From Octopus sinensis (lineage: Eukaryota): a stretch of 49,671 bases of DNA. The notes under the pieces are model-generated. The model had not been told where the DNA came from, did no database searches, and was given only the letters and a program-made list of their open reading frames with translations. Made by a program: the position numbers and the translations under genes. This document shows, in pieces, positions 18,990 through 49,671 of the stretch. The stretch's first letter is position 1. Each line of letters opens with the position of its first letter. The DNA is taken from assembly GCF_006345805.1 (NCBI RefSeq), contig NW_021834306.1, positions 1-49,671 of the forward strand. Reading direction: 5' to 3'.

Positions 18990-21900
18990 ATGCACTCTCA
19001 TAACGACAATAAACAAGGAATAATTCAGGTTATATTTCTGTCTTATCATTTATAGAACATGTTTACTGCTAGAGCTGTGGACAGCGACGAGTTTACAGGA
19101 GCAATGAACTACCTCAAGACTGTGCGAGACACTCCCTCTGGGCAATCAATCTTCCAACCACTCATAGAAATAGTCAGAAGGTTTAAAGCCAAAGAGTAGT
19201 TGTTTGTTTTATGGTGTAGAATTGTCGAATCAGAATTTACTCGACTAATATCTCTCGTTTTTAAGGACTATCCACAATATCTCGACAAATTTAACTCCTA
19301 CCTCCCCCAATATCTTCAAATCCCCACTTTGACCTCCCAAAATCCTACGAAGGACCGTCCTGGTCTTCCTTTAATCGACAAATCCATAATATTTGTACAA
19401 AGAGTGAAAGATCACTTCAAATATGCCCCTTCCTACTATTGGACCTTCATTCAAGTCATCCAAAACTACCAAAATGACCTGAAATTGGTTCCTCGAGGAT
19501 ATCCGCCCACATCACTGAAGAATAACCTCACCCCTGAGGACACTGTACTCAGAAAAATTTGCTCTCTCTTCACAGAGGAGCCCAATTTGTTGAATGAGTT
19601 TTTCGATTTGATCCCTCAGGTTGTATTTTGTGGGTTGATTGGTCAGTTTAAGAACTTGGTGGATCAGCCGGGCTTGCATTGTTCGGATATATATTCCGAG
19701 TCACCAGAAACGTCGTCTTTGCGGATAAACGGAGTGTTTTCACCAGTGAAAAGACAGTCCTCTCCATTAGTGGGTCACCCAGCCAAAGTTGTGGCGGAAG
19801 TGAGTGGTTTAATTCATTTTATTATTATTTAGGATGACGGTCTTTCGACACCTCCTTTGGGGGAGTGTCGAGGGGAATTATTGTCCGACTATTCCTTTTT
19901 TGACTGCGTAGTCATCAGGTGGACTGATGTGGTAGGTTAAGACTGTTCTGGTCGATCAGAGGGAGTACGACAACTTGATTGAATCAGTCAGACTATATAA
20001 GGAAGGAATTATATCACGGAGTAGACTATTAAGTAATGTGGAGGGAGTATTGGGGTGATGTCTTTATATATGTGTGTAGTATGTATCCCTCACTGCTTGA
20101 CCAGTTGAAGTATTTGTGTACAAAATGGAGGTCGAATGGATCTGTTTCTCCTCAGGTAAAGAAAGGTGGTTGGATTGGAGTGAGGAGTAGATGTGAGTGG
20201 ATTTAAGCCATATGGACAGAGCTATCGACAACTACCATCGACGTTGTCATCCTCCGTGTTGTACAACACACGGACAGTACTCGTTTATGTTGATTTGTAG
20301 AATCTGAATGTAACACATGTGTCATTCCCCTCATATGAAGACGACGAGAATTTGAGGGCAAAGAAGAATTGTTATCAAGACCAATTGACAAAGTGACCTC
20401 TTCTTTTATTGTTGTAGGGTGGAGGATGAGAGGATTGAGTTTGATTATGTCTTGACGAGCACACACGACTGTATTATGGCACTAAGGGGAGTCCATTCAG
20501 TCATTCGTGGGATGCTCAACCCGAACACTGTCAAGTTGGGAGACTCTCTAGGATTGTTGTCCCCAATGTTGGTTCATGCAGTGCTTTATCGGTACTCTTA
20601 TTTTGAGAATGTGCAGAATATTCCACGAAAAGTACTTGTCTGTGGTCAATTCGTTGGAATGTCTTCCATTTCAGGTGATTCCGATTGTGTTGGCGAGGTT
20701 GTGGGTGTTTTCGAATGTTAGATTGGAGAAGACCTACAACGAGTTATTCAACAGAAGGACTGCTTTATACGAGGATTGGGGGAGAGTGCAGAAGAGGACG
20801 TATTTGCGGTCACTCGACCATCAGAGTTCATGTTTCAAGACAGCCGAGTCCAAATCATTGCGTACTAGAGCACTGTGTGACGAGATTGAGAAGATGCGAT
20901 ATGTTGGTGGCCCCTCTCATGCCCAGCTGACGAGAGACCCGACTGTCGAGCCACATGTCACGTTGGACTATTCGACTATTGGAGTGATGGAAGACGCCGC
21001 TGATTTGTTGATATATTACGTCAAGAGACAGAACTGTACTGACTGGGTGACCATTTAGACTCCAATGAGGACAAAACGAGGATTAAGCGATTGGTTTATG
21101 TGTTCTTGGCTGACTTGGTGTTTATATCTCGTGGGGTTTTGTCTGATGATGAAGGTTTGTGAGTTTTTCTTATTGTAGAGTGTGGGTGTGTTGGGGATGT
21201 GGAGGAAGATTTGCGACTGTTTTATGGGGGTGTCCATTGGTACTGCTTCCTCAGACTGCATCATTTATTGTGCAATCGACTTGCTCGATTACAGGAGATT
21301 GTTACTGAGAGAATGCAAAGAGAAAAGGACTTGGATGATGACTCGGGGATTGCTCAACTCGTCGGACTCGACAATACAAGTATTCCCTCAATTCACGTGG
21401 CAGAACGGGATAGAATGAACTATTCTTATGGACTTCAATTAATTCGTGACTTGGTGGATGGGGTAGTCGACTCCTCCGCCTTTGAGGATCGGATGAGGGA
21501 AGTGTTTGGAGTCAATGCATTTATGTTATTCACAGTGGACAAACTATTGTACCACTCTGCCAAAAATGTATTGGTTTGTGTTATTTTGTAGTTGCAGAGA
21601 ATTGTAATGCGAGAATATAGTGTTGATGACGGGTCATTTTGTTTTATGAGGTTGTATGACAGATTTGTTAATCCTGGGGAATATTTTGTGGTAGTGTCCC
21701 ACGTCTATCAACTCTACAAATTCATTTTTGTATCTCCTTTGTGCTAATATGTCAGAACAGGAATCCCCGTTCTTTGGAAATCACTCTTCGACCGAGTAGA
21801 CCGGCTAATGACGGCGCTCGCATTCCTTTCCTGGCCAGGTTTGGGGAAGGCATTCATTTTAGGAATTTGAGGAAGTCTAGTTTGAGGAGATGTGTGCCTG

Positions 21901-22054
21901 ATATTCCCGATTCGGAAATGTTTGTGCGAGTAGGACGGTCAGGGAAAAGAGTATATTTGTGTGTGTATGTTAGTGGTCTTGGAACGAGCATGCGCGGAGA
22001 AGAATGACTGTGGATGGGAGTCCGATTTGGTTAAAGGGAATATTCCTTTTGTGA
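18990..22054 (+). CDS. SIN3: SIN3 transcriptional co-repressor, multi-exon
   Basis: PAH1 (AMNYLKTVRD...FKDYPQYLDKFNSYLP), PAH2 (IIFVQRVKDHF...LLNEFFDLIP), PAH3, HDAC-interaction domain (GQSYRQLP, VSFPSYED, VEDERIEFD, YLRSLDHQ) and Sin3_C (FYGGVHWYCFLRLHH, FEDRMRE). Introns 23-27 nt; both ends are approximate. Confidence 0.92.
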
Positions 22055-22876
22055 ACTGCACTGACTATATGTTTATAACTTGTCTTATCATTCTTCTTTA
22101 TGTGATTAAGTGGAATTGACAGACCTATAAGTGCTGTTCGATTGGTTCAATTAAATTATATTTGTGACATTAATGGTATTTATTTTGTTCAGAGGTTACT
22201 TTTACCAATCGATACCTGACCTGGTTGTTCAGACTGTTAATGTTCTAATCGATATTCTTTAAATTTAATTATGATTAGTTCATTTATTTAACCGCCAAGA
22301 CCACGATAAAAATCACACAAAAGTCACGTGATCCCGATTTATTTATTAACCCCCAAGCTTTCATGGCAAACCCAGCACAAACAGTCATAGCTAACTAATC
22401 GAATGAAAAAGCCAATTCGCCCAGTTCCCATTTGTCAGCCTCCTACCGTCGCTCACCGCACGTCATTGTTTTCGGAAGGGTTTTTCATAATGAAGATTTT
22501 TCATTGGTAATGTGATCAAGGGATCCCGATGCACTCGACACGGACCTCATCTTCGCTCGGAGATCTTTCCACGAGCCCACACAAGATCACACCGGGCGGC
22601 AGGCCGTTTTTGACGTAGCATTGACCTCAAAGTGCTGACAGATATCTTTGTCAATCCACTTATTTTGTATTGTTTTCCAGTGTGCTTATTAAGAATAATG
22701 TTTATACAAGATTAACGAATTTCATTAACCCGATTATTTCGAAAAATTAAAGTCGCGCAACATTCAAGTGGTGATTAGGTCACCAAATAGACTACATTAT
22801 TAGCAGAAAGTCCACCTGCTAAATAATACACATTCAGAATAAAAAACAAGAACTGATAGCGACCACAGGATCTTCA

Positions 22877-23651
22877 TTGCAAAACTGCGTAAAAAAGCAT
22901 CCAACTGGTAAAAATACATTGAAAGGCAAGACCAAATCCCAATATATACTTTTAGACAAAAAATTGAGGTTAGAGACATTTGTAAAGAAACATTGGAAGC
23001 AAATCGAGACTCTTATGGAGAAAATCGCACCCGAATCATCAGTAAAAACTCTGTGGGATCAAACAAAGCAGGTAATCTTAAAGTCGGCCAATATATTTCT
23101 TGGAGTTCAAAATTATCGTGCCCTAAAATTAGATAACCCCTAAACGTGCCAGATATGGTAAAGCATCGCAGAGAGCTATGGCTAAAAGTGCCAAACACGT
23201 CTGACAAGAGTAACCCGAAAGAAAAACCAGTAACCCAGAACTGATTGCATGACACTTTGAAACACTGTTGAATAAAGAAAATAAAGACTTTACTCCTTTC
23301 CAGAAAGAAGCAAAGGCGCTAAAAATCCCAATCACATTGGAAGAGATGAAATTAGCGATAAATAAACTGAAGAAGAAGAGTCCAATCACAGTGGAAAAAG
23401 TGAAATCGCCTGACAAGATAAGCCCTCAGCTTCTAAAATATTGGCCAAAGAAACTTAGCGACAGAAAACCCATAAATGACATCTTTGAAACTAATATCGA
23501 TCTATGCATTGAAAATGCATTATTAATGCCCATAAAAACCGAAAAAAACCAAACGGACCAGTTGAAAATCTCTGACCTAATACTCCTGAATTCGATGCGA
23601 AAGGTGCTGCCAAACATTGCACTAAGCCAGATAAAAAGTGTGTCGGATTAA
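22877..23651 (+). mobile_element. Decayed LINE ORF2 fragment
   Basis: PITLEEMKLAINKLKKK...SPDKISPQLLK resembles the pre-RT segment of LINE ORF2. Broken by stops. Confidence 0.55.
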
Positions 23652-23769
23652 TACCGACAAGCAAGTCAAAGTGGGTTCCGAGAAGGGAGGTCTACGGCAG
23701 AGATTGTATTGGTAAAGCACTAAAGATTTAAGAGCGCAACGACCGTGTTGAGAATACATCTCTCCAGAG

Positions 23770-24650
23770 CAGTGTTTCCCAACCTGAGTTTTGCGCAAAA
23801 TTTTAAGGGTTCCGGGGAGATCAGAAAAGCATATCGAAAAATAAAAATTCGAAATTAATTCACACGCATTTTTTTCTTCATCGTGAGGCATTGGTCGCAA
23901 AAACTATTGGACATTAAATTTTTTTGGACATATTGTAAAAATTATTAATTATATCAGAATGAGGCCGTTGAAATTATGAAAGTTCTTGAAACTTTGTGAA
24001 AATACAGAACATTCATTTTTGCTTTTCCATGCTGAAGTAAGATGTCTCTCAAAGGAAACATGTTAATTCGTTTCTATGAACAAAGACACGAATTCTTGAC
24101 ATTCTGCATACAAGACAAGTTGGATAACTTTATTAAATGCCCTAATGATGAATGTTAATGTTGCAAGATACCATGCTTTACCGATATTTTAATAAACTCA
24201 ATGTTCTCAATATGCAAAGAAGAAATGAAAATCTGTTGAGTTTTACACACAAAATAGCTGGTTTTATGAAAAAAAATAAAATATTAAAAAACATATAACA
24301 AATGGAAACTTGAAAATGTTTTCTCATGTGCAAGAAAGGAAGTGTAAAGAAATTATTCCATTAATTATTAATCATTTGGAGTCATTATTTATAAATTCAA
24401 AGAATTATTTTTCATCCATATGATTGGGTGAGGAATCCATTTGTTGAGCACGAAATCACTTTAAACGAGCTATTATTTAAAGAGGAAAAAGAACCTGCGT
24501 TTATTTCAAGAGACAGAAGATAAGAAATGGAATATTTAGAGCGTAATTTCAAAAGAAAACAAAGCTTTAAGAGTTTTGATTTGGTTTTCAACGACTTATC
24601 GCTGCGAAGGTGGATTTTCTGTTTTAACAAAAAAATGCGCCAACTTACTA
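23770..24650 (+). mobile_element. hAT (Buster/ZBED5-like) relic with one TIR
   Basis: TIR CAGTGTTTCCCAACC at 23770 preceded by the Charlie-type target CTCCAGAG; translated remnants FLHREALVAK, HAEVRCLSKG, DWVRNPF, FSTTYRCEGGFS. Confidence 0.75.
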
Positions 24651-24899
24651 TATGTAGAACAAGGGTTCACCTCCTCGTGGAGACGATTGGATGCTGATTC
24701 TCTTTCAGTAACAAGCAGAACCAACCTTTTCCCCTTGCCAACCAACCTGTCAACGGTTTGGTTGGTAATGGCTACGAGACGAGCGTCAAGCTTACGTTCC
24801 CTGACTCTTTTGACTACAGATACGTTGTCAAAAATCAAAAAATATAAAGAATCCCAAAATTTCGATGAACTTTTGGATAAGAAGGAGAAATATAAAGTC

Positions 24900-25423
24900 A
24901 AACAGCATTCAGAAACCTTATCGTTCACGACATCAACAACAAAGCATATTCCTTTCAATATCTTTATGGGAGTAAAGGGACCAAATGATGAAGAAATAAA
25001 AGCTCTCTGCGCGTTTTATGGAGAAGATGCTGATGCAGAAATTCAATTTATTGAAAATGAAAATATTACGAAAAATTTGTTATCAACATACGAGAATCTA
25101 ACGAAAGCAAGAGAAAAAATGAAAAGCAAACGGAAATGGAAATTCGACAAAAACGACATTAAGGTCGTTTAACGCGTGTTATGATGAGGATTAATGTCGG
25201 GGATAATGTTCTATTACGTCAAGATATTGATGCTAATCTACAGAATAGAAATTATCCATTATATGATCAAATTTATGCGAAAAAATATAAAGTTATTGCC
25301 AGAGAAAATATGAATTTTGATATTCAAGATGAAGAAGGATCTGTCGTAAAAAGAAAAAATATTGCGAGACTTTATAAAATGATCATCGGGAACGGACATG
25401 GCTTTTCCAACGCATATCAATAG
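24900..25423 (+). mobile_element. C-terminal remnant of an integrase-type (Ginger2/TDD-like) transposase
   Basis: STTKHIPFNIFMG and INVGDNVLLRQDIDAN resemble the region downstream of the catalytic E in this integrase class. Confidence 0.5.
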
Positions 25424-25518
25424 CCATCTTGCGTGGGAATTGCCATTCCATCCTATCCTCTGCTGCTAATTAAATATACATAATTATCATAAATTGATTC
25501 ACTTTATAAAATTGATTA

Positions 25519-25907
25519 ATGTTTTTGTTTATAAAAAATAATATAAGTAAAACGAATGCCGGGAGCGCAGTGGACAGACTGTATGCCGCGGAAAAAACGA
25601 TGAGGGCAAAGGAGAGAAAATATGAAGCGCTACGAGATCGATTCGTGTTCTGTCCGATTGTGGTCGAGACAACTGGAGGAATAAGTGGGAAATCGCTTCG
25701 CTTCCTAAAGAAGCTTGGACGCTTAGCCACATTAAAAAGCCACGACACACGTGAGACCCGGTGGCTTCTCCAGTTGATCTCCGTTGCTATCGTGAGAGGC
25801 AACGCAACGTCAATTATGTTGGCGGGGTCCACTTTGGACAGATGGCTTTATTAGCTAATTAGTTCCTTTTTAACTGATTTATTAATTTATCACATACCAA
25901 AAAAAAA
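25519..25907 (+). mobile_element. 5'-truncated CRE-clade non-LTR retrotransposon 3' end
   Basis: AGSA...KERKYEAL..FVFCPIVVETTGG...QLISVAIVRGNA endonuclease C-terminus; A10 tract at ~25898-25907. Confidence 0.8.
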
Positions 25908-26689
25908 ATTAAATATCATATACCAAAAAAATTCTATTGAATTGTTTCAATTTTCTAAAAAAATCAATTTCGTCCTTCGTTATAATTTGCATTTATATAT
26001 TTCCTGACCGATTTTTGTCGTCGTATTGTGCATGTCTGCTTCTGTCGTATTAAGAGAAGTAAATCCTAGGGCTCTCCTGATGAAGATTTAAATGTAAGCG
26101 AGAGACAATTGGATCTGGGGTTGGGCGGACCCTCTAGAAAAGCTGTTTGCGACCCTAAAGGTGCTGGAAATATGCCAACAAATTTGCACTCTGTCAATGC
26201 AATCGTTGGTGAAGCCGATTGTCCTTCTGAAAATTCACCGATTTCCCAAATTGAGGGAGCTGTAGAAGAACAGTCGATGAGGTTCAGGGGACTCTGTATT
26301 ATATTTTAAATCGGTTAAAAATAATTGCTCTTATTTCTATTAATGGCTCTTATTCTTACTAATAATTCTTGTTTTAACGGTTTTCCATTTTAAAAGTATT
26401 TTGTTATTTTTGGTTAAAATATTTCTGGTATTTTGGATTGCATTGTTATAAAATTTCTAATTAGAATTAATTTTTTATTAAAATTATTATTATTTAACAA
26501 AGACCACCGTCTAAAAACACAAAATAACTAATCAGGTGATTCCAGCTTCCGACGTTCTTCACAATATCTGTAGAGATGCGGCGGGTGTGTCATTTGGTAT
26601 TTAATCTCCCTATTTTTTCGCAAGATCTCCTAAAAGCGGCAATATTTAGTTGTTCGTTTGATCCTTCTAGAGTTTTGCAAATTCTTGAT

Positions 26690-27080
26690 TGAATTTTCGA
26701 ACTCGAATCCACCATTTCTCTAATTTTTCTTGTTGTAGATAAATGCCTTGCATACAAGGTGAATTTTATAACATTTACATTAGGTTTTGATTGAATTAAA
26801 CCAAATTTAAATAATATTTCTACCACGGAATACAACGTCGTTTTTGCAACCACTGGATCAGGGTAAAATTAAATCGTAAAAATGCAATTTTAATTCTTTT
26901 AAATTTTTAAATATTATTTAGAACATTGAAGCTGGGATAAGTCAGTATATTGCATACAAAAAATTAAACTTAAAAGATGCAATATTATTCAAACATTATG
27001 CATCGAACATTAATAGTTCCTAAATATTCAATGCTTCACACACCAAAAATGAATTTAAAACATTGAAAGTATAAATTATA
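26690..27080 (-). repeat. Old dispersed repeat, inverted homolog of 39810-40160
   Basis: Collinear shared blocks such as TCCCAGCTTCAAT, ACGATTTAATT-TACCCTGATCCA, GTGGTAGAAATA, ATAAAATTCACCTT and TCTACAACAAG. Confidence 0.75.
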
Positions 27081-27959
27081 AAAATTTGACAAAATTTTGA
27101 CAACTTTGCAAGTACCGAATACTTGGATTCAAATTTATTCAACATAAAGCTAGATTCGTCCAGTAATCCTTTACAATCCCAACTTTAATAAGATTAAAAA
27201 TTAATTTACAACTTTATCCCCTATGGCAGGGTCGGTAAATACTTTTGGTAAAGTGCCAATTTTGAACATTTTTGGAAATTTCGAAAAATTGAAGAGGCTA
27301 CTTCTACACTTGTCCAAATCAAAAATTCAAACTCATAAAATTAAATAGACATTCATTTAAAAAATAATTAAGAATTCATTAAAAAATAAAATTAATTAGC
27401 CTCATTTCTTTGGTAGTTTCTAATCTCTGAGTCGTAACTCGTTAATGTTAACCTGAGGTTAAACTTCAGATTCGAATCTGTAATTTTGTTTCTTAATTTC
27501 GATTTTATATAATTCATGTACGAAAAACTTTGTTAACACATATAAGTGGACCCAAATATTGTCAATTTTTTTAATTAGAACTTTTAATATTCTTGAAGAT
27601 ATTTTTTTACAATTCAGATATTTAATTAGCAGACATTTATAAAAAGAATCTGAAAGAAAATTCCACTTTTTGAAAATCAAATCTTCAATTTTCTTTAGTA
27701 TAAAATCAATATCACTTTTAATTTTACCGAATCATTTTATGTTCCAAGGTTTCAAGTTCTTCTGAAAGGCGAATTAACTTTGATACCCATAATTCCTTAC
27801 ATGTCAAGTCCATTAGCTGCATTTCGAACTTAACTGCTTTAATTTCAAGTGGCAATAAATTTAAAGTGCTGACTTAGCACATAGAGGGTTTATAACGAAT
27901 GATAGAGTTACCTTTTATTTTCTAAAATCCTTAAACATTTTAATATTTAAACGTTCATT

Positions 27960-28200
27960 TTGAAAATGTCAAACGTTTGCGCAGATAGTGCTTCTTGGTG
28001 GATAATAAAATGTAGAGTAATCACTTCGTGGTCAATTCTCTTTTTAATTAGCGTTATAAATCCCTTTCTCGATCCCAGTATGCGTGCAGCAACGATTTTA
28101 TTAAGAGAAATAAAATTCGTTTAAAATATTTTACGACTGCGCCAACAAGATATTCACCACGAATTTGACACTTTAAAGCCAATAATGCCAAAACTTATTG
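27960..28200 (-). mobile_element. hAT transposase internal fragment
   Basis: GSRKGFITLIKK...LHFIIHQEALSA resembles the hAT CxxH(Q/R)EAL region. Confidence 0.55.
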
Positions 28201-28562
28201 CCTCAGGAAACCTCGAGACACATAACGAACAAACAAAAACACCTAAGTATGACATTAACAATGTCATTTATATCACATGAATCATCTACTGCAGGGGTGT
28301 CAAACATGCGGCCCGCGGGCCGCATGTGGCCCTCGAAAGACATACAGTCTGTAACAGCAAAAAGGAATATTCTTAAAACACCATTTAAAATTAAATAATA
28401 TTCATTTTAAATATTTAAATCACTCTGATGACATTAATTATTATGTAATTACGTTTTTATAAATTTTAAAAATCTTTGAAAATACATAATTTTAGTTAAT
28501 TATTTGAAATTTTGTAACAGCAAAAAGTAATATATCAAAACCCAACAATAAAAACCATTGAA

Positions 28563-29542
28563 TTAATAGTTAGTATATTTTCCCTTGGCACGACAAAGGT
28601 CCAATGTTCTTTTTCTAAAACTTAACGACAATTTTTTGCATATTTCTTCATCAAATCCATTCCAAACGTTTAAAATTTCGGCCTTTAGATCTTTTAAATT
28701 CTGAGGCGCTCTTTCTGCTATTTTCTCTTTAATTATTCCCCATAAGTTTTCGATTGGGTTACAATCAGGAGATTGGGGGGGCCATTGCAACAATTCAACA
28801 TTTTTTTCATTCAAAAATTGTTTAGTAAGCTTTGCTGTGTGTTTAGGATCGTTATCCTGTTGGAACACAAATTCATCAAGCTGCATTTTTTCCGCATAAG
28901 AAAACAAATTCCTTGATAAAATTTCAATATATTTGTATTTGTCCATTATACCGTCAATAAAAACTAATTTGCCGACGCCATAATATGAGAAACAAGCCCA
29001 AACCATCAAACTGCCACCACCATGTTTTACAGTAGGTAAAATATTTTTGGGTTCTAACTTTTTATTGCGTTTTCGCCCAACAAAAGGCTTTCCATTGGTG
29101 TAGAAAAGGTTGAATTTACATTCATCTGAAAAAATAATGCTCTTAAGTTTTTTTTCATCATATTGAATCCATTTGCATGCTGCTTCATAACGTAATTTAA
29201 TTATTCGTGGTGTTAGCAATGGTTTTTTTATTGGTTTGTGTGCATATATTTTTTTCTTGTTCAACATTCTTTTAATTGTCATATGACTAATTGATAAGTT
29301 TCTCTCATTTTTCAATTTAATAGAAATTTTCCTAAGTGACAATTTGGAGTTTTGTTCAATTTCATAAGAAATCATGTTTGAAATTTCTTCAGAATAAATA
29401 TTATGACCACCACTGCCTTTTCTGGGTACCTTTGTATTGCTTAAAGACATTTTTTTATTTGTTTCGAAATTGTTGATTGGCTAACGTGCAGAATAGATGC
29501 AATATGTTTTTGCTTGAAACCGGCATTTTTTAATGAAATCAT
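28563..29542 (-). pseudogene. Tc1 DD34E transposase, one 1-nt frameshift in an A-run
   Basis: FSDECKFN, QQDNDPKH and WPPQSPDCNPIE give 34 residues between D and E. The N-terminal HTH (MISLKNAGFKQKHIASILHVSQSTIS) is out of frame at 29451-29456. Confidence 0.9.
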
Positions 29543-29795
29543 TTGTGCTATTTTATTTGTAGTCAGTTTAATTTCTATAAGTTATTATTAGGGCAACCAG
29601 AAATATGACCTTAAAAAGTTAAATATGACCGTAAAAAATATGACTTTATGACTTTAAAATTCTAAAATATAACTTAAAAATATTAAAATATGACCTAAAA
29701 AATCAAAATATGACCTATCGAATTTTGATTTTTAGATATTCTGAATTTGAAAATATGAAAAAATTAAACATTTCAATCAATCAATGAATTTATTA

Positions 29796-36928: not shown

Positions 36929-37516
36929 TGTCGCGAGCGCAGCGCGCGACCGAGCGCTAGACGCGACTTTGACACCTAACAAGCCTATCATCAACAAATA
37001 TATTTATTAATTATTTAAAATTTTAACATGATTTAAAATTAAAATTGAAATAACTTAAGTTTTCCATTGAATCCCATAAAATAATTTATAAGTAGACCTT
37101 AATAGAAAAAGTAAAATCAATGAATACTGAACGCTAATTTGGTTTAGGTTGTGAGGGGGGTAATAATTTGACAGATCTCATTGCTATTTTTTCGTTTTAA
37201 TCTCTAAAATTAGGTCTTCTAATCAAAAATGAACTGTGCAGACAGGCTTGCTCCTTCAGAAGATCTTGTTTTGACATTTTTATAAATTATGAAGCATTTA
37301 GATTTTTTCTCATTATTCTAAAATATCAATTATAAATTTTAAAATATTATTTTTATTTATGAAATCGGTTTTAAAGCTCATTCTGCTTGGCATCGATTTT
37401 AATTTTTGTTATCGAATATATTTAATCCCAAATACAAGCCTGGGTATTTGTCAATTTATAGATTTTTTGATTGATCGGATCTAGAAATTGAGTGGTCGCT
37501 CGCTGCGCTCGCGACA
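36929..37516 (+). mobile_element. TGT...ACA non-autonomous element (family G2), right copy, 588 bp
   Basis: TIR TGTCGCGAGCGCAGCG(C/A)GCGACC, flanked on both sides by TATTA (36924-36928, 37517-37521). No coding capacity. Confidence 0.88.
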
Positions 37517-37837
37517 TATTACTTTTTGCTGTTACAAAATTTCAAATAATTAACTAAAATTATGTATTTTCAAAGATTTTTAAAATTTATAAAAGCGTAA
37601 TTACATAATAATTAATGTCATCAGAGTGATTTAAATATTTAAAATGAATATTATTTAATTTTAAATGTTGTTTTAAGAATATTCCTTTTTGCTGTTACAG
37701 ACTGTAGGTGCGGCCCTCAGCGTACTTTGCCAAACATAAGTGCGGTCTGATTTAATGGCTATAAAATGCAAAAAATTATTTTTTATTTTTTACATTTAAT
37801 TAAAATTTTTAATTGTATTTTTAAATCGTGTTTGTTA

Positions 37838-39107: not shown

Positions 39108-39809
39108 AGGGCGATAATTGAATAATTTAGTTTCTCTTATTTTGGTTATTCATCATAATAAATATCAGAACTAATCTTCCCTTAATGAGAAATTATTATA
39201 AATGCGGCCCTCAAAGCGAAATGAGTTTGACACCCCTGATCTACTGCAAATGAATTAGCCAATTTCATGTCAGAAACTTGTTGAACAGACACATTCGAAG
39301 ACATCTTAAAAGTCCTGTAGGCTACTATTTTTGCAGATAAAGGTACACTAAAGTCTTTCGAATCCGCAAATTTCGAGGATCGGAAAAATCTGGCGGATTT
39401 GAAAGACTTATGGATTTTTTAATCCATTAAAAATTTAAATTATTAAGCCAAAAAAATTAATTAAAACCAAAATAATGAGTCAGTTTCGAATTTTTCTTTT
39501 TCGAGTTTGGCTCATTGAAGATCCAATGTTTTCAATATACTCAAGATTTTCTATATTAAAGAATATTCTTGATTATAGAACTCTTTTAATTTGTTTAAAG
39601 CGATAAAAGCCTCGTTAATAGTAAACACTCTGACTTTGTTCACACTGTTCTTCGCTAATTTCTTGTTCTATTTTTTCTGAATTATTTAATTCAAGTTCTT
39701 CACTTTCGTTATATTCAATCTTAATATAAAGACTCTCTTCTAATGGATCAATAATATCCATTTTTTCCAGAATATGGTCATAAGTTTCAATAAAAGATTT
39801 TTCACAATT

Positions 39810-40160
39810 AATATTTTCACTGTTTTGAGTCCATTTTGCATGAGTGAAACAATTTAAAATTAATGAACTTTCTATTTTGTTCCAAGCATAATTAATATGT
39901 GAATAATATTGAATCTTTTATGCTTAGTTGTTTGTGTGAAACATAGGGGTTTGTCCCAGCTTCAATTTTTTAATTATATTAAAAAAATTTTAGAGAATTG
40001 AAGTTACATTTATACGATTTAATTATACCCTGATCCATGGGCTGTAAAAAAGATGTTGTATTAGGTGGTAGAAATAACATCTCAATTTGTTTTAGTTCAA
40101 TGTAAATTTCATAAAATTCACCTTATGTGCAGGAGATTGATCTACAACAAGTAAAATTTT
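39810..40160 (+). repeat. Old dispersed repeat, inverted homolog of 26690-27080
   Basis: Same collinear blocks as listed for the partner copy. Confidence 0.75.
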
Positions 40161-40167
40161 TCGCAAA

Positions 40168-40445
40168 GTGGAAAAATACAAGAATCTTGCCACTCGGCAT
40201 TCCTTCGTGCCTGTGGCTCTTGAGACATCAGGCGCTTCCGGTCCGCAGACCTCATGCTTCTTAAAAGACCTCGGTATCCTCATCGCTCGGAAGAAGATGG
40301 ATGCTCGCGAGTCCTCTTGGTTGAGGCAGAGGATCTCACTCGCAATCGTGCGTGGGAACGCGCAAGCAATCCGTTCGGCTGGATTAATTTAGTTAACTGA
40401 CAATTGTTTTGTTCATTTAAAGCAATACTATGTATAAAAAAAAAT
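40168..40445 (+). mobile_element. CRE-clade retrotransposon 3' end (second subfamily)
   Basis: KYKNL..HSFVPVALETSG...LRQRISLAIVRGNA followed by an A-tract at ~40436-40444. Confidence 0.8.
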
Positions 40446-40515
40446 TGATTATTTATAAATAAATTTAATTCAAAAATTATTTAAAATTAGGATACATGGC
40501 GGATTCATTATAATA

Positions 40516-41782
40516 TGTCACATGGGCGACTATGTCGCTATGGGCAGCCAGTACTTTCACGTGTTTCTATGGAAACCGCAGAAAAGGTATTAAATATTGA
40601 ATATAGCAATTTATATATGGAAGAGTGTAGATATAATCAATTATTCTAATTTAAAATTACATTTGAATTATCTTTTAAAAATGGCTTACCCAAAAGTATA
40701 TTAATTTAACAGCGTGGTTACTCACACTTTGTGATGTCTGGGTTTAAGGGTTACGTCAGAAATATTACGAATACAATCAAATTAAAGAAGCGTTAATCGG
40801 GATATTCCCGGAGGATATGAATGCTCGAAGCAAACACCGGTTGGCCAAAAAGGCTTCCATTTTTGTCAAAAATGTCTGAAGAATCGTCAGCAGAACATCA
40901 TTTAATTTCGAGTTAGGGTTACGTTAGGGCTTGGGTTAAGGTTAGGGTTAGATTTGAATATTTATTTTGTCACTTGCCAACGTTTGGGTTAGGGTTAGAT
41001 TTGAATATTTATGTTGTCACTTGCCAACGTTAGGGTTAGGGTTAGATTTGAATATTTATGTTGTCACTTGCTAACGTTAGGGTTAGATTTGAATATTTAT
41101 GTTGTCACTTGCCACGTTAGGGTTAGATTTTGAATACATTTATGTTGTCACTTGCCAACTTAGGGTTAGGTTAAGGTTAGGGTTAGATTTGAATATTTAT
41201 TTTGTCACTTGCCAACGTTTGGGTTAGGGTTAGATTTGAATATTTATGTTGTCACTTGCCAACGTTAGGGTTAGGGTTAGATTTGAATATTTATGTTGTC
41301 ACTTGCTAACGTTAGGGTTAGATTTGAATATTTATGTTGTCACTTGCCAACGTTAGGGTTAGATTTTGAATACATTTATGTTGTCACTTGCCAACGTTAG
41401 GGTTAGGTTAAGGTTAGGGTTAGATTTGAATATATTTATGTTGTCATTTGCCAACGTTAGGGTTTGGGTAAGGTTAGAGTTAAAGTTTTTACAAACTTTG
41501 CAAAAAATTTGATGTAAATTATAATTTGCTAATGTTGCAATTTATATTATCAAAAAAAAATAATTCACATTATAATTTGCTAATGTTGTAAATAATTTTA
41601 CTATTTTAAAGCAAGCATGGTTCAAATATAAAACATCATTTCCTCAAAAATTTAAAGTTCAATCATTAGTTCGGATCGCTTGTTTTTATATTATTTGGCC
41701 TTTAGTAAATATTTGCTATGTAGTTGCCATGGAAACACGTAAAGGCCAGGTTGCCCATAGGGGTCTGATCACCCATGTGACA
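40516..41782. mobile_element. TGT...ACA non-autonomous element (family G3) carrying a telomere-like minisatellite
   Basis: ~60-bp imperfect TIR TGTCACATGGG-N11-CTATGGGCA...ACGTGTTTC(C/T)ATGG and exact TSD TAATA (40511-40515, 41783-41787). Confidence 0.88.
40913..41480 (+). repeat. Minisatellite: 11 copies of ATTTGAATATTTATGTTGTCACTTGCCAACG separated by TTAGGG-type repeats
   Basis: Read unit by unit. Units 1-5 recur as units 6-10. Confidence 0.97.
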
Positions 41783-41879
41783 TAATAAATATGACGGATT
41801 CGAGAATTTTTTATAGGAAAAATGGCGGATAAGAAAATTTATTAGTTATAATTGGCATATTCGAGAGACTTTACTGTCA

Positions 41880-42420
41880 TTATCTTATTCACGATTTCTG
41901 CCTTATTTGAAAAATCGTTAAAAAGTTCTTCACAGATTTAAAACATGTCTTGATAAATTCGCCATCGGTAAATAGTTTTCCACTTTTTGTGATCTCGTGG
42001 CTTATCAAAAAGTTGACAATATTTGCAGTCCCGGCAGTGTGTTGCCAATATTTAAAAGAGGAATTATCAATCTGATTATTCTTTGCAAGTTCTTCTACAG
42101 ATTTCTTTAGTGAATCACCAATTAGATATTTTTTGCAAAATTTGAGTGTTTTGTGTTAAGTGTCTCTCTAAATTTGACTTTTTGTTTTAATTTAAAGTTT
42201 CCTGGAAAATAAGGCATTTCGGTAGTTGTTCTAAATTAGATGTGAACCAAGATACAATCCATATTGATTGAAAATGTCGGTAATTATAGATTTTTTTGTT
42301 TTATTTCTAGGTACATATAATGTACCATCAAAAATTCATGTTAAACATGTAAAGATTTTTTTATTAACAGAATATTTATTAATAAAGAAAAAATTAACAA
42401 AAAAATTAAAAATGGAAAAG
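41880..42420 (-). mobile_element. hAT (SPIN-like) transposase N-terminal relic
   Basis: FLISHEITKSGKLFTDGEFIKTC and a degraded upstream zinc-finger segment. Confidence 0.65.
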
Positions 42421-42534
42421 CCAATTTTAACCAAAGTTTGAAATACATGCTATATCGTATAAGCAAAATTTAGGAGTAAATATGTAAACTTTTAAATAGT
42501 TTTACACAAATCATATATTAAAACCAAATAAATA

Positions 42535-44210
42535 TACCATTTACAACTCTATTTTGCAAGTACGAAATTTAATTTGCGGTCAGTAAACTCATTCCTGCAA
42601 ATAAGAAATGATTTTTGCGGTTAAGAAAATCGATTTTGCAATCAAGAAAATTAATTTGCGGTCATGAAAGTCGGTTTTGCAAGTGGGAAATTAAATTTGC
42701 GGCTAGGAAAATCGATTTTGCTAGTAGGAATACTACCTTTGCTAGCAGGAAATTCAATTTGCAAATTCATTTTGTATAACCTTGACGCAACATTAATGCG
42801 TTTAAACAATATATAAGTATTTTTGCGTGTTAAAATTAAATTAAAAATGGCACAAAATCGAGAAGTCTCCGAAAATTCACAGAAAATGGTACAGAAGACA
42901 TTTGCATAAACAGACAAGGAAGAGGACATTACGGAAAATATTCAATGGAAAAACGGAAATTGATCATAGACACACACGATAGAGATGGAGATTGGCGCTC
43001 TTATGCAGGTCTTTGGAGTGAAAGAAAGGACCGCATATTATTGGATTAAAAATAAAAAAATTGAATTACTTCCTAAAGGAGGAAAGATTTGGAGTAAAAA
43101 AAGTGAAGAAATTATATCTGCTCTATTAACTTGGATTGAATGCGATTGCCAGATCTCATTGGTCGAATGTACTGAAAAATTCAAGCTCAATTCAATGTTA
43201 CTGTTTGTGTAAATACAGTAAAAATTGGCTTGATGGACAATTAATTTCATTGAAATCAATTCGGCCAGTCACAATAAACATGAATACAGAGGAAAATAAA
43301 ATAAAAAGAATGGAGTATTTAACACGTCTTTTGAATGCGAGATCTAAAGGAAGAACTATAATTTGGATAGATGAGTCAAATTTTAATTTATTTTGTCGTC
43401 GTAAAGAAGGACGTTCAAAAATTGGATGTCGGTCTATTGTTCTTGCACCCAGTAGCAGAGGGTCAAATTTACATTGTATAGCTGCAATGTCATCATCACA
43501 AATATATAATTTTAAGTGCAGAGAGAGGCTCATATACAGGGGAGTCCTGTAAAACATGGTTTAGGCAACTTATTAATGAATGTGATGCATCAGGAGTTAC
43601 ACATCCAACATTCGTAATTGATAATGCTCCTATTCCAGTCAACTTGAGTCTGTAATAAATCCAGGAGAAAATAGTGAATTATTAAGACTAGCGCCATATT
43701 CTTATTTAATCAACCCAAAGAATTGCTTGGAGTTCATTCAAAGCTGAAGTAAAGAAGAGATTCGTGAAAATATGGATATAATTATAAATATAAAAAAAAA
43801 TGCAGAGGGACTGTCAATAACCGAATTCAGAATGAGAATCTTGGAAAGGATTGAATTGAGGCAAAAGAAGTATTAACTCCACAAAAGTTAATGGAATTCT
43901 CGAATCATGTGGAGAGATATTACCCCTCAGTAATTCGATGTGAAGATTTAAACTGACAATTCTTATTTGTAATAAAAATTTCTTGCAAAATAGAATTTCT
44001 CACTTGCAAAAATGGTTTTCATGACCGCAAATTTAATTTTCTTGATTGCAAAATTGGTTTCCCAGTCGCAAAATTCATTTACTATTTGCAAAAATGATTT
44101 TCCTAACCGCAAACCGGATTTCTTACATGCAAAATTGCCATTCTTGACTGCAAATTTAATTTCCAGATTGCAAAATGATGTTCTCAGCTGCAAATTGACT
44201 TGTAATGGTA
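42535..44210 (+). mobile_element. IS630-like Tc1/mariner-superfamily element with ~250-bp repeat-array ends and frameshifted transposase
   Basis: Ends TATACCATT...AATGGTATA; IWIDESNFNL, VIDNAP and LRLAPYSYLINPKE (about DD33E after one frameshift). Confidence 0.88.
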
Positions 44211-44400
44211 TAGTTATAAAAACAATAAAATTGAAGAGCCTACTTAAGACTCAAAGAGCCATCAAAGGCTCGCAAGCCCGCTTTTCCGACCCCTGCTCTA
44301 TGGCATAATTTGCATTTATTACAATGCACGCACATTGGAAAACGAGTGCATCGTTATATTGTAGGAATAAACCAAATATTTCACCCTCTGCCCGTCCAAC

Positions 44401-47400
44401 ATGCCGGAAGCGCAGTGGACAGACTGTATGCCGCGGAAAAAAAACGATGAGGGGCGAAGGAGAGAAAATATGAAGCGCTACGAGATCGATTCGTGTTCTG
44501 TCCGATTTGTGGTCGAGAAATGGAGGAATATCAAGACCAATTGACAAAGTGACCTCTTTTTTATTGTTGTAGGGTGGAGGATGAGAGGATTGAGTTTGAT
44601 TATGTCTTGACGAGCACACACGACTGTATTATGGCACTAAGGGGAGTCCATTCAGTCATTCGTGGGATGCTCAACCCGAACACTGTCAAGTTGGGAGACT
44701 CTCTAGGATTGTTGTCCCCAATGTTGGTTCATGCAGTGCTTTATCGGTACTCTTATTTTGAGAATGTGCAGAATATTCCACGAAAAGTACTTGTCTGTGG
44801 TCAATTCGTTGGAATGTCTTCCATTTCAGGTGATTCCGATTGTGTTGGCGAGGTTGTGGGTGTTTTCGAATGTTAGATTGGAGAAGACCTACAACGAGTT
44901 ATTCAACAGAAGGACTGCTTTATACGAGGATTGGGGAGAGAGTGCAGAAGAGGACGTATTTGCGGTCACTCGACCATCAGAGTTCATGTTTCAAGACAGC
45001 CGAGTCCAAATCATTGCGTACTAGAGCACTGTGTGACGAGATTGAGAAGATGCGATATGTTGGTGGCCCCTCTCATGCCCAGCTGACGAGAGACCCGACT
45101 GTCGAGCCACATGTCACGTTGGACTATTCGACTATTGGAGTGATGGAAGACGCCGCTGATTTGTTGATATATTACGTCAAGAGACAGAACTGTACTGACT
45201 GGGTGACCATTTAGACTCCAATGAGGACAAAACGAGGATAAGCGATTGGTTTATGTGTTTGGCTGACTTGGTGTTTATATCTCGTGGGGTTTTGTCTGAT
45301 GATGAAGGTTTGTGAGTTTTTCTTATTGTAGAGTGGGATGTGTTGGGGATGTGGAGGAAGATTTGCGACTGTTTTATGGGGGTGTCCATTGGTACTGCTT
45401 CCTCAGACTGCATCATTTATTGTGCAATCGACTTGCTCGATTACAGGAGATTGTTACTGAGAGAATGCAAAGAGAAAAGGACTTGGATGATGACTCGGGG
45501 ATTGCTCAACTCGTCGGACTCGACAATACAAGTATTCCCTCAATTCACGTGGCAGAACGGGATAGAATGAACTATTCTTATGGACTTCAATTAATTCGTG
45601 ACTTGGTGGATGGGGTAGTCGACTCCTCCGCCTTTGAGGATCGGATGAGGGAAGTTTTGGAGTCAATGCATTTATGTTATTCACAGTGGACAAACTATTG
45701 TACCACTCTGCCAAAAATGTATTGGTTTGTGTTATTTTGTAGTTGCAGAGAATTGTGATGCGAGAATATAGTGTTGATGACGGGTCATTTTGTTTTATGA
45801 GGTTGTATGACAGATTTGTTAATCCTGGGGAATATTTTGTGGTAGTGTCCCACGTCTATCAACTCTACAAATTCATTTTTGTATCTCCTTTGTGCTAATA
45901 TGTCAGAACAGGAATCCCCGTTCTTTGGAAATCACTCTTCGACCGAGTAGACCGGCTAATGACGGCGCTCGCATTCCTTTCCTGGCCAGGTTTGGGGAGG
46001 CATTCATTTTAGGAATTTGAGGAAGTCTAGTTTGAGGAGATGTGTGCCTGATATTCCCGATTCGGAAATGTTTGTGCGAGTAGGACGGTCAGGGAAAAGA
46101 GTATATTTGTGTGTGTATGTTAGTGGTCTTGGAACGAGCATGCGCGGAGAAGAATGACTGTGGATGGGAGTCCGATTTGGTTAAAGGGAATATTCCTTTT
46201 GTGAACTGCACTGACTATATGTTTATAACTTGTCTTATCATTCTTCTTTATGTGATTAAGTGGAATTGACAGACCTATAAGTGCTGTTCGATTGGTTCAA
46301 TTAAATTATATTTGTGACATTAATGGTATTTATTTTGTTCAGAGGTTACTTTTACCAATCGATACCTGACCTGGTTGTTCAGACTGTTAATGTTCTAATC
46401 GATATTCTTTAAATTTAATTATGATTAGTTCATTTATTTAACCGCCAAGACCACGATAAAAATCACACAAAAGTCACGTGATCCCGATTTATTTATTAAC
46501 CCCCAAGCTTTCATGGCAAACCCAGCACAAACAGTCATAGCTAACTAATCGAATGAAAAAGCCAATTCGCCCAGTTCCCATTTGTCAGCCTCCTACCGTC
46601 GCTCACCGCACGTCATTTGTTTTCGGAAGGGTTTTTCATAATGAAGATTTTTCATTGGTAATGTGATCAAGGGATCCCGATGCACTCGACACGGACCTCA
46701 TCTTCGCTCGGAGATCTTTCCACGAGCCCACACAAGATCACACCGGGCGGCAGGCCGTTTTTGACGTAGCATTGACCTCAAAGTGCTGACAGATATCTTT
46801 GTCAATCCACTTATTTTGTATTGTTTTCCAGTGTGCTTATTAAGAATAATGTTTATACAAGATTAACGAATTTCATTAACCCGATTATTTCGAAAAATTA
46901 AAGTCGCGCAACATTCAAGTGGTGATTAGGTCACCAAATAGACTACATTATTAGCAGAAAGTCCACCTGCTAAATAATACACATTCAGAATAAAAAACAA
47001 GAACTGATAGCGACCACAGGATCTTCATTGCAAAACTGCGTAAAAAAGCATCCAACTGGTAAAAATACATTGAAAGGCAAGACCAAATCCCAATATATAC
47101 TTTTAGACAAAAAATTGAGGTTAGAGACATTTGTAAAGAAACATTGGAAGCAAATCGAGACTCTTATGGAGAAAATCGCACCCGAATCATCAGTAAAAAC
47201 TCTGTGGGATCAAACAAAGCAGGTAATCTTAAAGTCGGCCAATATATTTCTTGGAGTTCAAAATTATCGTGCCCTAAAATTAGATAACCCCTAAACGTGC
47301 CAGATATGGTAAAGCATCGCAGAGAGCTATGGCTAAAAGTGCCAAACACGTCTGACAAGAGTAACCCGAAAGAAAAACCAGTAACCCAGAACTGATTGCA

Positions 47401-49671
47401 TGACACTTTGAAACACTGTTGAATAAAGAAAATAAAGACTTTACTCCTTTCCAGAAAGAAGCAAAGGCGCTAAAAATCCCAATCACATTGGAAGAGATGA
47501 AATTAGCGATAAATAAACTGAAGAAGAAGAGTCCAATCACAGTGGAAAAAGTGAAATCGCCTGACAAGATAAGCCCTCAGCTTCTAAAATATTGGCCAAA
47601 GAAACTTAGCGACAGAAAACCCATAAATGACATCTTTGAAACTAATATCGATCTATGCATTGAAAATGCATTATTAATGCCCATAAAAACCGAAAAAAAC
47701 CAAACGGACCAGTTGAAAATCTCTGACCTAATACTCCTGAATTCGATGCGAAAGGTGCTGCCAAACATTGCACTAAGCCAGATAAAAAGTGTGTCGGATT
47801 AATACCGACAAGCAAGTCAAAGTGGGTTCCGAGAAGGGAGGTCTACGGCAGAGATTGTATTGGTAAAGCACTAAAGATTTAAGAGCGCAACGACCGTGTT
47901 GAGAATACATCTCTCCAGAGCAGTGTTTCCCAACCTGAGTTTTGCGCAAAATTTTAAGGGTTCCGGGGAGATCAGAAAAGCATATCGAAAAATAAAAATT
48001 CGAAATTAATTCACACGCATTTTTTTCTTCATCGTGAGGCATTGGTCGCAAAAACTATTGGACATTAAATTTTTTTGGACATATTGTAAAAATTATTAAT
48101 TATATCAGAATGAGGCCGTTGAAATTATGAAAGTTCTTGAAACTTTGTGAAAATACAGAACATTCATTTTTGCTTTTCCATGCTGAAGTAAGATGTCTCT
48201 CAAAGGAAACATGTTAATTCGTTTCTATGAACAAAGACACGAATTCTTGACATTCTGCATACAAGACAAGTTGGATAACTTTATTAAATGCCCTAATGAT
48301 GAATGTTAATGTTGCAAGATACCATGCTTTACCGATATTTTAATAAACTCAATGTTCTCAATATGCAAGAAAGAAATGAAAATCTTTTGAGTTTTACACA
48401 CAAAATAGCTGGTTTTAGGAAAAAAATAAAATATTAAAAAACATATAACAAATGGAAACTTGAAAATGTTTTCTCATGTGCAAGAAAGGAAGTGTAAAGA
48501 AATTATTCCATTAATTATTAATCATTTGGAGTCATTATTTATAAATTCAAAGAATTATTTTTCATCCATATGATTGGGTGAGGAATCCATTTGTTGAGCA
48601 CGAAATCACTTTAAACGAGCTATTATTTAAAGAGGAAAAAGAACCTGCGTTTATTTCAAGAGACAGAAGATAAGAAATGGAATATTTAGAGCGTAATTTC
48701 AAAAGAAAACAAAGCTTTAAGAGTTTTGATTTGGTTTTCAACGACTTATCGCTGCGAAGGTGGATTTTCTGTTTTAACAAAAAAATGCGCCAACTTACTA
48801 TATGTAGAACAAGGGTTCACCTCCTCGTGGAGACGATTGGATGCTGATTCTCTTTCAGTAACAAGCAGAACCAACCTTTTCCCCTTGCCAACCAACCTGT
48901 CAACGGTTTGGTTGGTAATGGCTACGAGACGAGCGTCAAGCTTACGTTCCCTGACTCTTTTGACTACAGATACGTTGTCAAAAATCAAAAAATATAAAGA
49001 ATCCCAAAATTTCGATGAACTTTTGGATAAGAAGGAGAAATATAAAGTCAAACAGCATTCAGAAACCTTATCGTTCACGACATCAACAACAAAGCATATT
49101 CCTTTCAATATCTTTATGGGAGTAAAGGGACCAAATGATGAAGAAATAAAAGCTCTCTGCGCGTTTTATGGAGAAGATGCTGATGCAGAAATTCAATTTA
49201 TTGAAAATGAAAATATTACGAAAAATTTGTTATCAACATACGAGAATCTAACGAAAGCAAGAGAAAAAATGAAAAGCAAACGGAAATGGAAATTCGACAA
49301 AAACGACATTAAGGTCGTTTAACGCGTGTTATGATGAGGATTAATGTCGGGGATAATGTTCTATTACGTCAAGATATTGATGCTAATCTACAGAATAGAA
49401 ATATCCATTATATGATCAAATTTATGCGAAAAAATATAAAGTTATTGCCAGAGAAAATATGAATTTTGATATTCAAGATGAAGAAGGATCTGTCGTAAAA
49501 AGAAAAAATATTGCGAGACTTTATAAAATGATCATCGGGAACGGACATGGCTTTTCCAACGCATATCAATAGCCATCTTGCGTGGGAATTGCCATTCCAT
49601 CCTATCCTCTGCTGCTAATTAAATATACATAATTATCATAAATTGATTCACTTTATAAAATTGATTAATGT
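44401..49671 (+). repeat. Permuted segmental duplication: 44401-44530 matches 25556-25683, then 44529-49671 matches 20373-25522
   Basis: Near-identical by eye, with identical ORFs offset by ~24.15 kb. The junction GGAGGAA-TA-TCAAGACC shares TA between the two donors. Confidence 0.96.
44529..46204 (+). pseudogene. SIN3: 5'-truncated SIN3 copy (no PAH domains), with indel frameshifts
   Basis: Starts mid-exon at YQDQL; +1 frameshift at ~44935 and further indels at 45240-45670 relative to 20373-22054. Confidence 0.85.

Follow-up and report, generated by a model that had tools for sequence, protein, structure and literature searches.

Two non-homologous DNA joints place a partial Sin3-like gene copy and retroelement debris at the end of a probable dicyemid contig

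Described duplications of comparable form

The colour-sidedness alleles of cattle KIT were reportedly made via circular DNA intermediates, a result ascribed to Durkin and colleagues in 2012. These alleles are described in PMC12235870, and human segmental duplications formed via circular DNA show block pairs A-B/C-D in the order B-A/D-C (Chicote et al., 2020, PMC7450558). The repeat analyzed here resembles the human and cattle cases in its swapped blocks, its kept orientation and a joint with microhomology only. It differs from them in its unit of about 5 kb (versus 10^5 bp or more), in an acceptor that shares a contig with the donor at a distance of 18.7 kb, in one block being 128 nt long, and in the far end of the copy, which lies beyond the contig; moreover, its support looks thin.

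Dicyemids, the parasites to which this contig probably belongs, reportedly produce extrachromosomal circular DNA under developmental regulation (Noto et al., 2003, as cited in PMC6543705). In Dicyema sp., the class of "circular contigs" above 500 bp has a median length of 702 bp (PMC6543705). The probable taxon of our contig matches, and the joint 25683|20373 would be the joint of such a circle. However, the reported circles are small, free molecules whose re-insertion is not described there, whereas here the joint is read in the contig only.

Tandem duplications made by FoSTeS/MMBIR are also similar: the repeat is arranged head to tail with a constant spacing of 24.15 kb, a microhomology of 2 nt and a filler taken from nearby in the same orientation. 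In contrast to them, the filler begins exactly at a retroelement boundary beside an AT-rich tract, and the second unit is visible for 5.1 kb. False duplications at the ends of long-read contigs, or spurs derived from single reads, share the position of the copy at the contig end, the dominance of indels and the occurrence of all frame breaks in the copy, but the present repeat is permuted across two non-homologous joints and hence is no simple haplotig or undetected overlap.

Geometry and gene content of the repeat

The window, meaning the whole stretch of DNA analyzed (49,671 nt), is the complete contig VCDQ01006449.1 of the Octopus sinensis PacBio assembly (GCA_006345805.1), and the copy ends at its last base, position 49671. 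BLAST of the window against itself aligned a long block at 20373–25522 with 44529–49671 (5152 columns, 99.67% identity, 6 mismatches, 10 gap openings, E = 0) and a short block, here called the leader, at 25556–25683 with 44401–44530 (132 columns, 93.9% identity, 2 mismatches, 5 gap openings, E = 5e-50), all on the + strand. The order of the blocks is swapped and their orientation is kept: in the copy, 25556–25683 stands before 20373–25522. The spacing of the direct repeat is constant at 24,150–24,156 nt, and the repeat runs off the contig. As the window is the complete contig, the long match terminates because the contig does, not because of any property of the repeat. Of the 5311 donor positions, 5278 are represented in the visible copy, which breaks off at the equivalent of 25522, 33 nt before a full turn; a unit length of 5309–5311 nt presumes that the copy ends at 25555.

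Across the joint at 44529–44532 (+ strand) the copy reads ...GGAGGAATA|TCAAGACC..., the donor at 25683 reads ...GGAGGAATA|AGTGGG and the donor at 20373 reads ...AATTGTTA|TCAAGACC. The overlap between the donor ends is TA alone, with no extended homology. In the contig tail, DNA is thus joined without homology at two points separated by 128 nt (44400|25556 and 25683|20373). These joints place the 3' part of a Sin3-like gene, with adjoining retroelement debris, a second time downstream of the first copy. A preliminary description of this DNA had reported the coordinates, the swapped order and the TA microhomology correctly, as judged from the self-comparison and the letters at the junction. Hairpin and cruciform potential at the four breakpoints was nothing special (z-scores of -0.7 to +0.6).

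The donor gene, a Sin3-like co-repressor, was placed at 19200–22100 on the + strand (3' limit approximate) by Pfam matches and a spliced frame. On this strand the domains follow the order of Sin3: PAH (19200–19829) and the tail of the HDAC-interaction domain (Sin3_corepress, 20389–20718), both below the Pfam cut-offs, and then Sin3a_C (21163–21588, E = 4e-26). Splicing out four introns at 20393–20417 (25 nt), 20632–20674 (43 nt), 21036–21058 (23 nt) and 21155–21178 (24 nt) gave an unbroken frame of 396 codons. The donor of the long block begins in a Sin3 exon, 20 nt ahead of the 25-nt intron, and continues through the 3' part of the gene into decayed mobile-element sequence; no Pfam family was found in the stop-free stretches between 21592 and 25420. 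At 44529–49671 the copy is a 5'-truncated, frame-broken Sin3 fragment. It keeps all four introns (25, 43, 23, and 24 nt), and applying the splicing of the donor to it produced 9 stops and 4 frame changes. Lacking the 5' exons, it is not a working gene and cannot encode the full protein. The intron loss of a retrocopy or a LINE-mediated transduction was not observed, and because the introns are retained in the Sin3 part, the copy was most probably made from DNA and not from RNA.

Introns of only 23–43 nt in a contig of an octopus assembly suggest that its source is probably a dicyemid parasite, contaminating a host-directed assembly; the preliminary description had guessed at this taxon, and the introns support it. 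Among animals, introns of this length have been reported solely from Dicyema and myxobolid myxozoans (PMC13644364, PMC6543705). A sulfotransferase gene is also present on the contig.

Retroelement tails and differences between donor and copy

All six frames of the contig were searched with a retroelement profile of 50 relatives. At 25372–25467 (+ strand, profile positions 201–232, E = 2.5e-8) it matched the last ~30 codons of the nuclease domain of a non-LTR retroelement, referred to as tail X; this match lies inside the duplicated block and recurs in the copy at 49521–49616. It is followed on the same strand by a tract with a GC content of 12.5% (25468–25555), probably the 3' UTR of X. No other 80-nt stretch of the unit is as rich in AT; the permutation point lies at the right edge of this tract, and the contig's end falls at the tract's equivalent. 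At 25556 the GC content rises abruptly from 12.5 to 50%, and a second tail, Y, begins (25556–25854, + strand, profile positions 144–233, E = 1.6e-26), whose first 128 nt (25556–25683) are the donor of the leader. Judged by sequence similarity, Y is the 5'-truncated C-terminal tail of an RT-bearing non-LTR family with a restriction-like nuclease domain; "CRE" is the label of the preliminary description. It has 1074 relatives at E ≤ 0.001, the long ones bearing RT, CCHC and nuclease motifs, while only ~90 residues of the element are present at Y and no RT adjoins it. No target-site duplication longer than 7 nt was found around Y, and tRNA and Rfam scans at the start of the leader revealed neither a SINE-like promoter nor a ribozyme.

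The flank to the left of the leader (44250–44400, no strand assigned, GC 45%) is open in the leader's frame, as had been stated before, but shows no detectable similarity to the retroelement family. The profile search in six frames gave no similarity there; the 57-codon peptide upstream of the leader, searched alone, gave just a non-significant CCHC-like match; and in a shuffle test against the nuclease region of the family the observed score was no better than those of the shuffles. A sensitive nucleotide search of 44180–44400 against the contig returned one 15-mer only, which we judged to be chance. Protein searches beyond the contig with the Sin3 exons and the retroelement tail found nothing, and a 24-mer common to the leader and 25556–25683 had 0 matches in a metagenome scan.

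The long block of the copy differs from the donor by 10 indel events and 6 substitutions, the leader by 5 indel events of the homopolymer type and 2 substitutions. In the other repeats of the contig, 15 indels were found versus 154 substitutions (about 10:1 in favor of substitutions), and the indel share of the leader was unlike theirs (p = 2e-4). Differences were 18-fold denser in the leader than in the long block (Fisher p = 5e-7). The clustering of indels near the junction noted in the preliminary description is therefore real but one-sided, with 7 differences in the 128-nt leader versus a single one in the 400 nt that follow the joint. The two blocks' similarity to the donor was 93.9 versus 99.67%, and the excess differences of the leader are homopolymer indels, of the consensus-error kind. 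All frame-breaking changes were located in the copy and none in the donor, the indel load of the copy was at least 10 times that of the rest of the contig, with the leader being worst, and ~8 kb of other reading frames in the contig were unbroken. As error-like differences concentrate in the copy, and above all in the leader, we infer that they represent consensus error and that few molecules support the joint. Error-prone repair synthesis was rejected as a source of the leader's 5.5% differences, which are far above reported error rates.

Origin of the copy

The reading that we consider most likely, tentatively and with a probability of roughly 0.3, is a 24.15-kb duplication in head-to-tail arrangement, or a large circle, in which a 128-nt templated filler sits at the joint; it fits about as well as a re-inserted 5.3-kb circle. 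The segment 20373–44400 (24.15 kb) would have been repeated in tandem, or would have formed a large circle by looping out, and the joint would have been made by break repair or by template switching during replication. The filler would have been copied first, from 25556–25683 inside the same segment, and synthesis would then have resumed at 20373 on two bases of microhomology. The circular permutation would be only apparent, the contig stopping 5.1 kb into the second unit. The rearranged molecule may have made up only a small part of the DNA sequenced, stemming from a minority allele, a co-infecting lineage or a somatic event, and the assembler may have retained it as a spur with thin support where the contig ends; this would account for the consensus-type indel errors in the copy and especially in the leader.

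Such a duplication needs only the two observed joints, while each other model needs a third, unseen one. It is consistent with the constant spacing of a repeat that runs off the contig, with TA microhomology in place of extended homology, and with a short insert at the joint. The template of this insert lies nearby (5.2 kb into the unit), its orientation is unchanged, and TA is shared where the second switch occurs. Joints made by replication or repair commonly carry short templated fillers, as known from FoSTeS/MMBIR. The retained introns make an RNA intermediate unlikely, and the dominance of indels, with frame breaks confined to the copy while the other frames of the contig are intact, also fits a 24-kb duplication kept as a spur. 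Three pieces from within 24 kb in one orientation would almost never be given by random ligation of library fragments. Nevertheless, the duplication leaves the filler's start exactly at the retroelement boundary 25556 unexplained, and it requires a coincidence of ~1–3%, as the contig ends 33 nt short of a full 5311-nt turn in the AT-rich tract that borders the filler's source. Only 5.1 kb of the putative 24.15-kb second unit lie in the contig, any match past 25683 falling beyond 49671, and the model gives no reason why the assembler took a rare joint over the normal continuation after 44400.

The end of the contig so close to a full turn is better explained by the re-integrated circle that the preliminary description had proposed, which we regard as possible but doubtful. 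A 5.3-kb piece (20373–25683) would have circularized on TA, broken at 25555/25556 and been end-joined at 44400, 18.7 kb from its origin, as one permuted unit. Two donor blocks in swapped order and the same orientation, with a microhomologous joint lacking long homology, are the published footprint of circular intermediates (PMC7450558). The geometry is exact, a stop 33 nt before the turn closes is expected if donor similarity and read support from the donor locus end at 25555, and a single cut in the unit's most AT-rich tract would account for where the leader starts and where the copy ends; the circles attributed to dicyemids by Noto et al. (2003), as cited in PMC6543705, add to this. However, the two-joint 24-kb duplication predicts the same visible sequence, and the circle requires the third joint. 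The random opening at 25556 that had been envisaged would give a leader of at most 128 nt in only 2.4%, or more broadly ~2–5%, of cases, the reported dicyemid circles are far smaller than 5.3 kb even in their long class, and neither a free circle nor a 20372|25684 excision scar was seen within the contig. Had a real insertion been flanked by normal sequence, the assembler should have continued into it. The more specific statement that the tail is a dicyemid extrachromosomal circle, formed by 5.3 kb from the Sin3-like gene and its flanking retroelements and re-entered into the chromosome 18.7 kb away in a minority of cells or individuals, is quite unlikely. Less likely again is the same final structure without a circle, by re-ligation of breaks at 20373, 25556, 25684, and 44401 or by three successive template switches in repair synthesis. 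It would give identical joints and microhomology from pieces that are all local and keep their orientation, and the leader's start and the long block's end could both stem from a single break at 25555/25556. Against it, a free 128-nt fragment would probably be lost in break-and-rejoin, template switching would have to land at 25556 and leave at 25555 by coincidence, and sequence alone cannot tell it from the circle.

The error-type differences, which suggest very few supporting molecules, bear out part of the earlier warning of an artefact; the artefact itself stays a minority reading that we consider unlikely. The tail would then derive from one or very few aberrant long reads, and its joints would exist in no genome. 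The position at the very end of the contig, the error-like spectrum with its high indel load, and the possibly uneven support of a probable parasite contaminant in a host-directed PacBio assembly all favor this explanation, but a chimera from blunt ligation would join fragments at random, most of them from the octopus, and would not give three pieces of the same orientation from one 24-kb neighborhood, one of them only 128 nt long. A missed hairpin adapter would produce inverted and not direct repeats, and the joints have no sequence overlap able to mislead overlap-based joining. In addition, read-correction steps usually split joints backed by a single read. Another explanation would take the leader as an older resident copy of the same family, with a break repaired via donor Y and copied leftwards to 20373 before end joining, or with recombination of a circle. 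The sharp change at the joint from 94 to 99.7% identity (leader to Y versus long block) and the open 45% GC flank agree with a resident copy, and homology at one end would account for the meeting of the two loci. Nothing resembling the element was found upstream of 44401, however, so that the leader would share the exact 5' truncation of Y by chance or the family would have a fixed 5' end; 5 of the 7 leader differences being homopolymer indels is improbable (p = 1e-4) given the indel share of the contig's real repeats; and since leader-specific differences reach within 10 nt of the joint, a crossover with a circle would need to sit in those last 10 nt. The recombination with a resident "CRE" copy suggested previously is thus not supported, and a resident leader in any form is very improbable. 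An RNA-mediated copy would start from a read-through transcript whose 3' terminus coincides with that of tail X (25555); the element's enzyme would reverse-transcribe it and jump at 20373 onto RNA of the Y family. The 3' end of the retroelement tail and its UTR falls at 25555, where the permuted reading predicts the right end, and template jumping is a known trait of the enzymes in this class of elements. The retention of all four short introns is a strong argument against this origin, which would need a 5.2-kb unspliced RNA template and of which neither a poly(A) tail nor a target-site duplication is visible in the contig; we regard it as extremely improbable. Unequal crossing-over between Y and the leader was rejected, as it would duplicate 25684–44400 and not the Sin3 block, and a haplotig duplication is ruled out for the left side by the permuted order.

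If the tail is a 24-kb duplication or a spur, the practical value lies in recognizing that this contig, part of a widely used octopus reference, is probably of parasite origin and that its final 5.3 kb should not count as a gene duplication. Circular DNA and genome rearrangement have been reported in dicyemids for two decades and are barely characterized. A true permuted 5.3-kb insertion would provide these animals' first example of circle re-insertion at the level of sequence, and if a dicyemid circle did re-enter the chromosome here, developmentally produced circles would be able to re-insert and remodel genes.

The permuted repeat and the source of the contig

Comparing the window with itself, we aligned 44529-49671 to 20373-25522 at 99.67% identity over 5152 columns, and the leader that opens the copy (44401-44530) to 25556-25683 at 93.9% over 132 columns, reproducing to the base the repeat coordinates of the preliminary description. 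In a three-way alignment the copy jumps to 20373 after the equivalent of 25683, and TA, the microhomology noted before, is all that is shared at the switch; the sequence left of the leader showed no similarity to the donor sequence before 25556. Donor and copy keep a constant spacing of 24,150-24,156 nt. A permuted repeat far beyond chance is confirmed. The last base of the copy is equivalent to 25522; it lies within an AT-rich tract, and another 33 nt would complete one 5311-nt turn. The long match stops because the contig stops, and has no natural end.

The window spans the whole of contig VCDQ01006449.1 in assembly GCA_006345805.1, which PMC10700109 (citing Li et al., 2020) gives as the Octopus sinensis genome built from PacBio and Hi-C data. 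The contig's genes are compact and not cephalopod-like in appearance. An unbroken 396-codon frame of its Sin3-like gene requires four introns of 25, 43, 23, and 24 nt; no animals other than Dicyema and myxobolid myxozoans have been reported to have introns so short (PMC13644364; PMC6543705). GC content is 35.5%, and D. japonicum has 36.7% GC and 49% repeats (PMC6736024). Together, intron length, its reported taxonomic range and GC content make it likely that the contig derives from a parasitic dicyemid of the kidney whose DNA was assembled with that of its host, in line with an earlier guess. Only two genes are annotated on the contig, between 6150 and 27235. Three host-type genes are intact: polyubiquitin with three 228-nt units (1200-1958), an Rpp14/Pop5 RNase P subunit (9463-9918), and a single-exon galactose-3-O-sulfotransferase (16147-17235), for which even the best relatives from elsewhere reach only 32-34% identity.

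The duplicated unit and neighboring repeats

On the plus strand of the donor locus, matches to PAH, Sin3_corepress, and Sin3a_C follow one another in that order, and 20373 is an exonic position of the Sin3-like gene, 20 nt ahead of the 25-nt intron. All four introns are kept in the copy, which was therefore made from DNA; a route through RNA is hardly credible. Because the copy, spliced like the donor, contains 9 stops and 4 frame changes and lacks any exon upstream of 20373, it does not represent a working gene. Beyond the Sin3 matches no recognizable domains were found in the block before tail X, a retroelement tail of about 30 codons (25372-25467). An 88-nt tract of 12.5% GC (25468-25555) and a longer second retroelement tail, Y (25556-25854), follow. 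The Y family has 1074 relatives at E ≤ 0.001, and its long members combine a reverse transcriptase, a CCHC motif, and a restriction-like nuclease domain.

C-terminal tails of one kind of non-LTR element occur at four separate places in the contig (X, Y, the leader, and 40159-40380), and no full-length copy of it was found there. Tail Y follows the probable 3' UTR of X without a gap, and the tail at 40159 adjoins an inverted copy of the repeat at 26722-27085. Near the start of Y, GAGCGCAGTGG (25561-25571) agrees at 10 of 11 positions with TRGCNNAGTGG, the pol III A-box consensus, and its leader counterpart is AAGCGCAGTGG (44406-44416); tRNA and Rfam scans of this A-box-like start gave no match. 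A fixed 5' end would be accounted for if members of the family were short elements that carry a promoter of their own.

A satellite at 40921-41484, some 3 kb upstream of the rearranged joint, forms an interstitial telomere-like array, with two to three TTAGGG telomere-type repeats per 47-nt unit and the units in a 235-nt higher-order repeat of 96% identity. A decayed DDE_3/HTH transposase remnant (42970-43549) is flanked on both sides by arrays of a 41-nt repeat, inverted relative to each other (42545-42749 and 43982-44195); 42545-44195, which stops some 200 nt short of the leader, probably represents an old Tc1/mariner-like element. A 197-nt inverted repeat (28340-28536 and 37513-37709, 98% identical) encloses 9 kb with a Tc1/mariner transposase (28566-29480), a DUF659 hAT-like ORF (31198-32340), and a LINE with APE and RT domains (32895-36345), all on the minus strand; a hAT element (37751-39104) lies just outside.

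How the copy differs from its donor

The long block differs from its donor at 15 sites, 10 of which are indel events, and the leader at 7, including 5 indel events; almost all alter the length of a base run or drop a base between runs. Other repeat pairs in the contig showed 154 substitutions vs. 15 indel events (indel share compared with these pairs, p = 2e-6 for the long block and 2e-4 for the leader). Frame-breaking changes in the Sin3 exons are all in the copy, and elsewhere in the contig about 8 kb of reading frames show no breaks. Difference density in the leader was 18 times that of the long block (p = 5e-7). The indel clustering near the junction described previously holds to the left of the joint, with the 7 differences of the leader, but not to the right, where the first 400 nt contain only one. 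Based on the indel spectrum, the copy-only frame breaks and the leader density, we infer that the differences represent consensus error, not age. The long block could be corrected up to the joint by the abundant donor-locus reads, but the 128-nt island could not, so that the quality of the island would reflect only the few molecules truly crossing. Support for the joint looks thin.

Origin of the two joints

Two joints, 44400 to 25556 and 25683 to 20373, have to be explained by any model; the probabilities we assign are judgements, not computations, and do not add up to the whole, part of which is left unassigned. Our leading, still tentative reading (about 0.3) is that 20373-44400 was duplicated head to tail, or as a large circle, with a 128-nt filler that would have been templated from 25556-25683, inside this segment. 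The two joints seen suffice for it, the constant spacing fits, and short filler from nearby sequence is usual at such duplication joints; however, the contig end just short of a full turn and the filler start exactly at the X/Y boundary would both be coincidences. Re-insertion of a 5.3-kb circle, proposed in the preliminary description, would explain both by a single cut within the tract where the unit is richest in AT, and its geometry equals a published footprint (PMC7450558). Nevertheless, this doubtful route needs a third, unseen joint, a leader this short is expected only 2-5% of the time, the circle would be far larger than those reported for dicyemids, and the failure of the assembler to continue into normal flank is left unexplained. 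The swapped-block geometry and TA joint of that proposal stand, while the circle itself is one of two comparably likely readings, which remain close.

Less probable than either is a pure artefact: random ligation would have had to join three pieces from one 24-kb neighborhood in the same orientation, one of only 128 nt, in a library of mostly octopus DNA. As such ligation is unlikely, a real but rare molecule is the more likely explanation. A circle-free route to the structure expected from a re-inserted 5.3-kb circle is unlikelier again. Recombination with a resident element copy had also been suggested, but that the leader is such an older copy is very improbable, given the indel spectrum (p = 1e-4), the lack of element similarity upstream of 44401, and the need for exactly the same 5' truncation point as Y. 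The left flank of the leader (44305-44319) shares 15 identical nt, including ATTTGCAT, with 25982-25996, about 130 nt downstream of the Y stop codon (E = 0.008, short-query search); no extended similarity surrounds this match, which is therefore probably due to chance.

Under any of these readings the kind of event is already known, be it a circular-intermediate duplication, a tandem duplication with a templated insertion, or a spur at a contig end. The taxon, with its link to dicyemid circular DNA, would be the sole novelty, and only if a 5.3-kb circle was in fact re-inserted.
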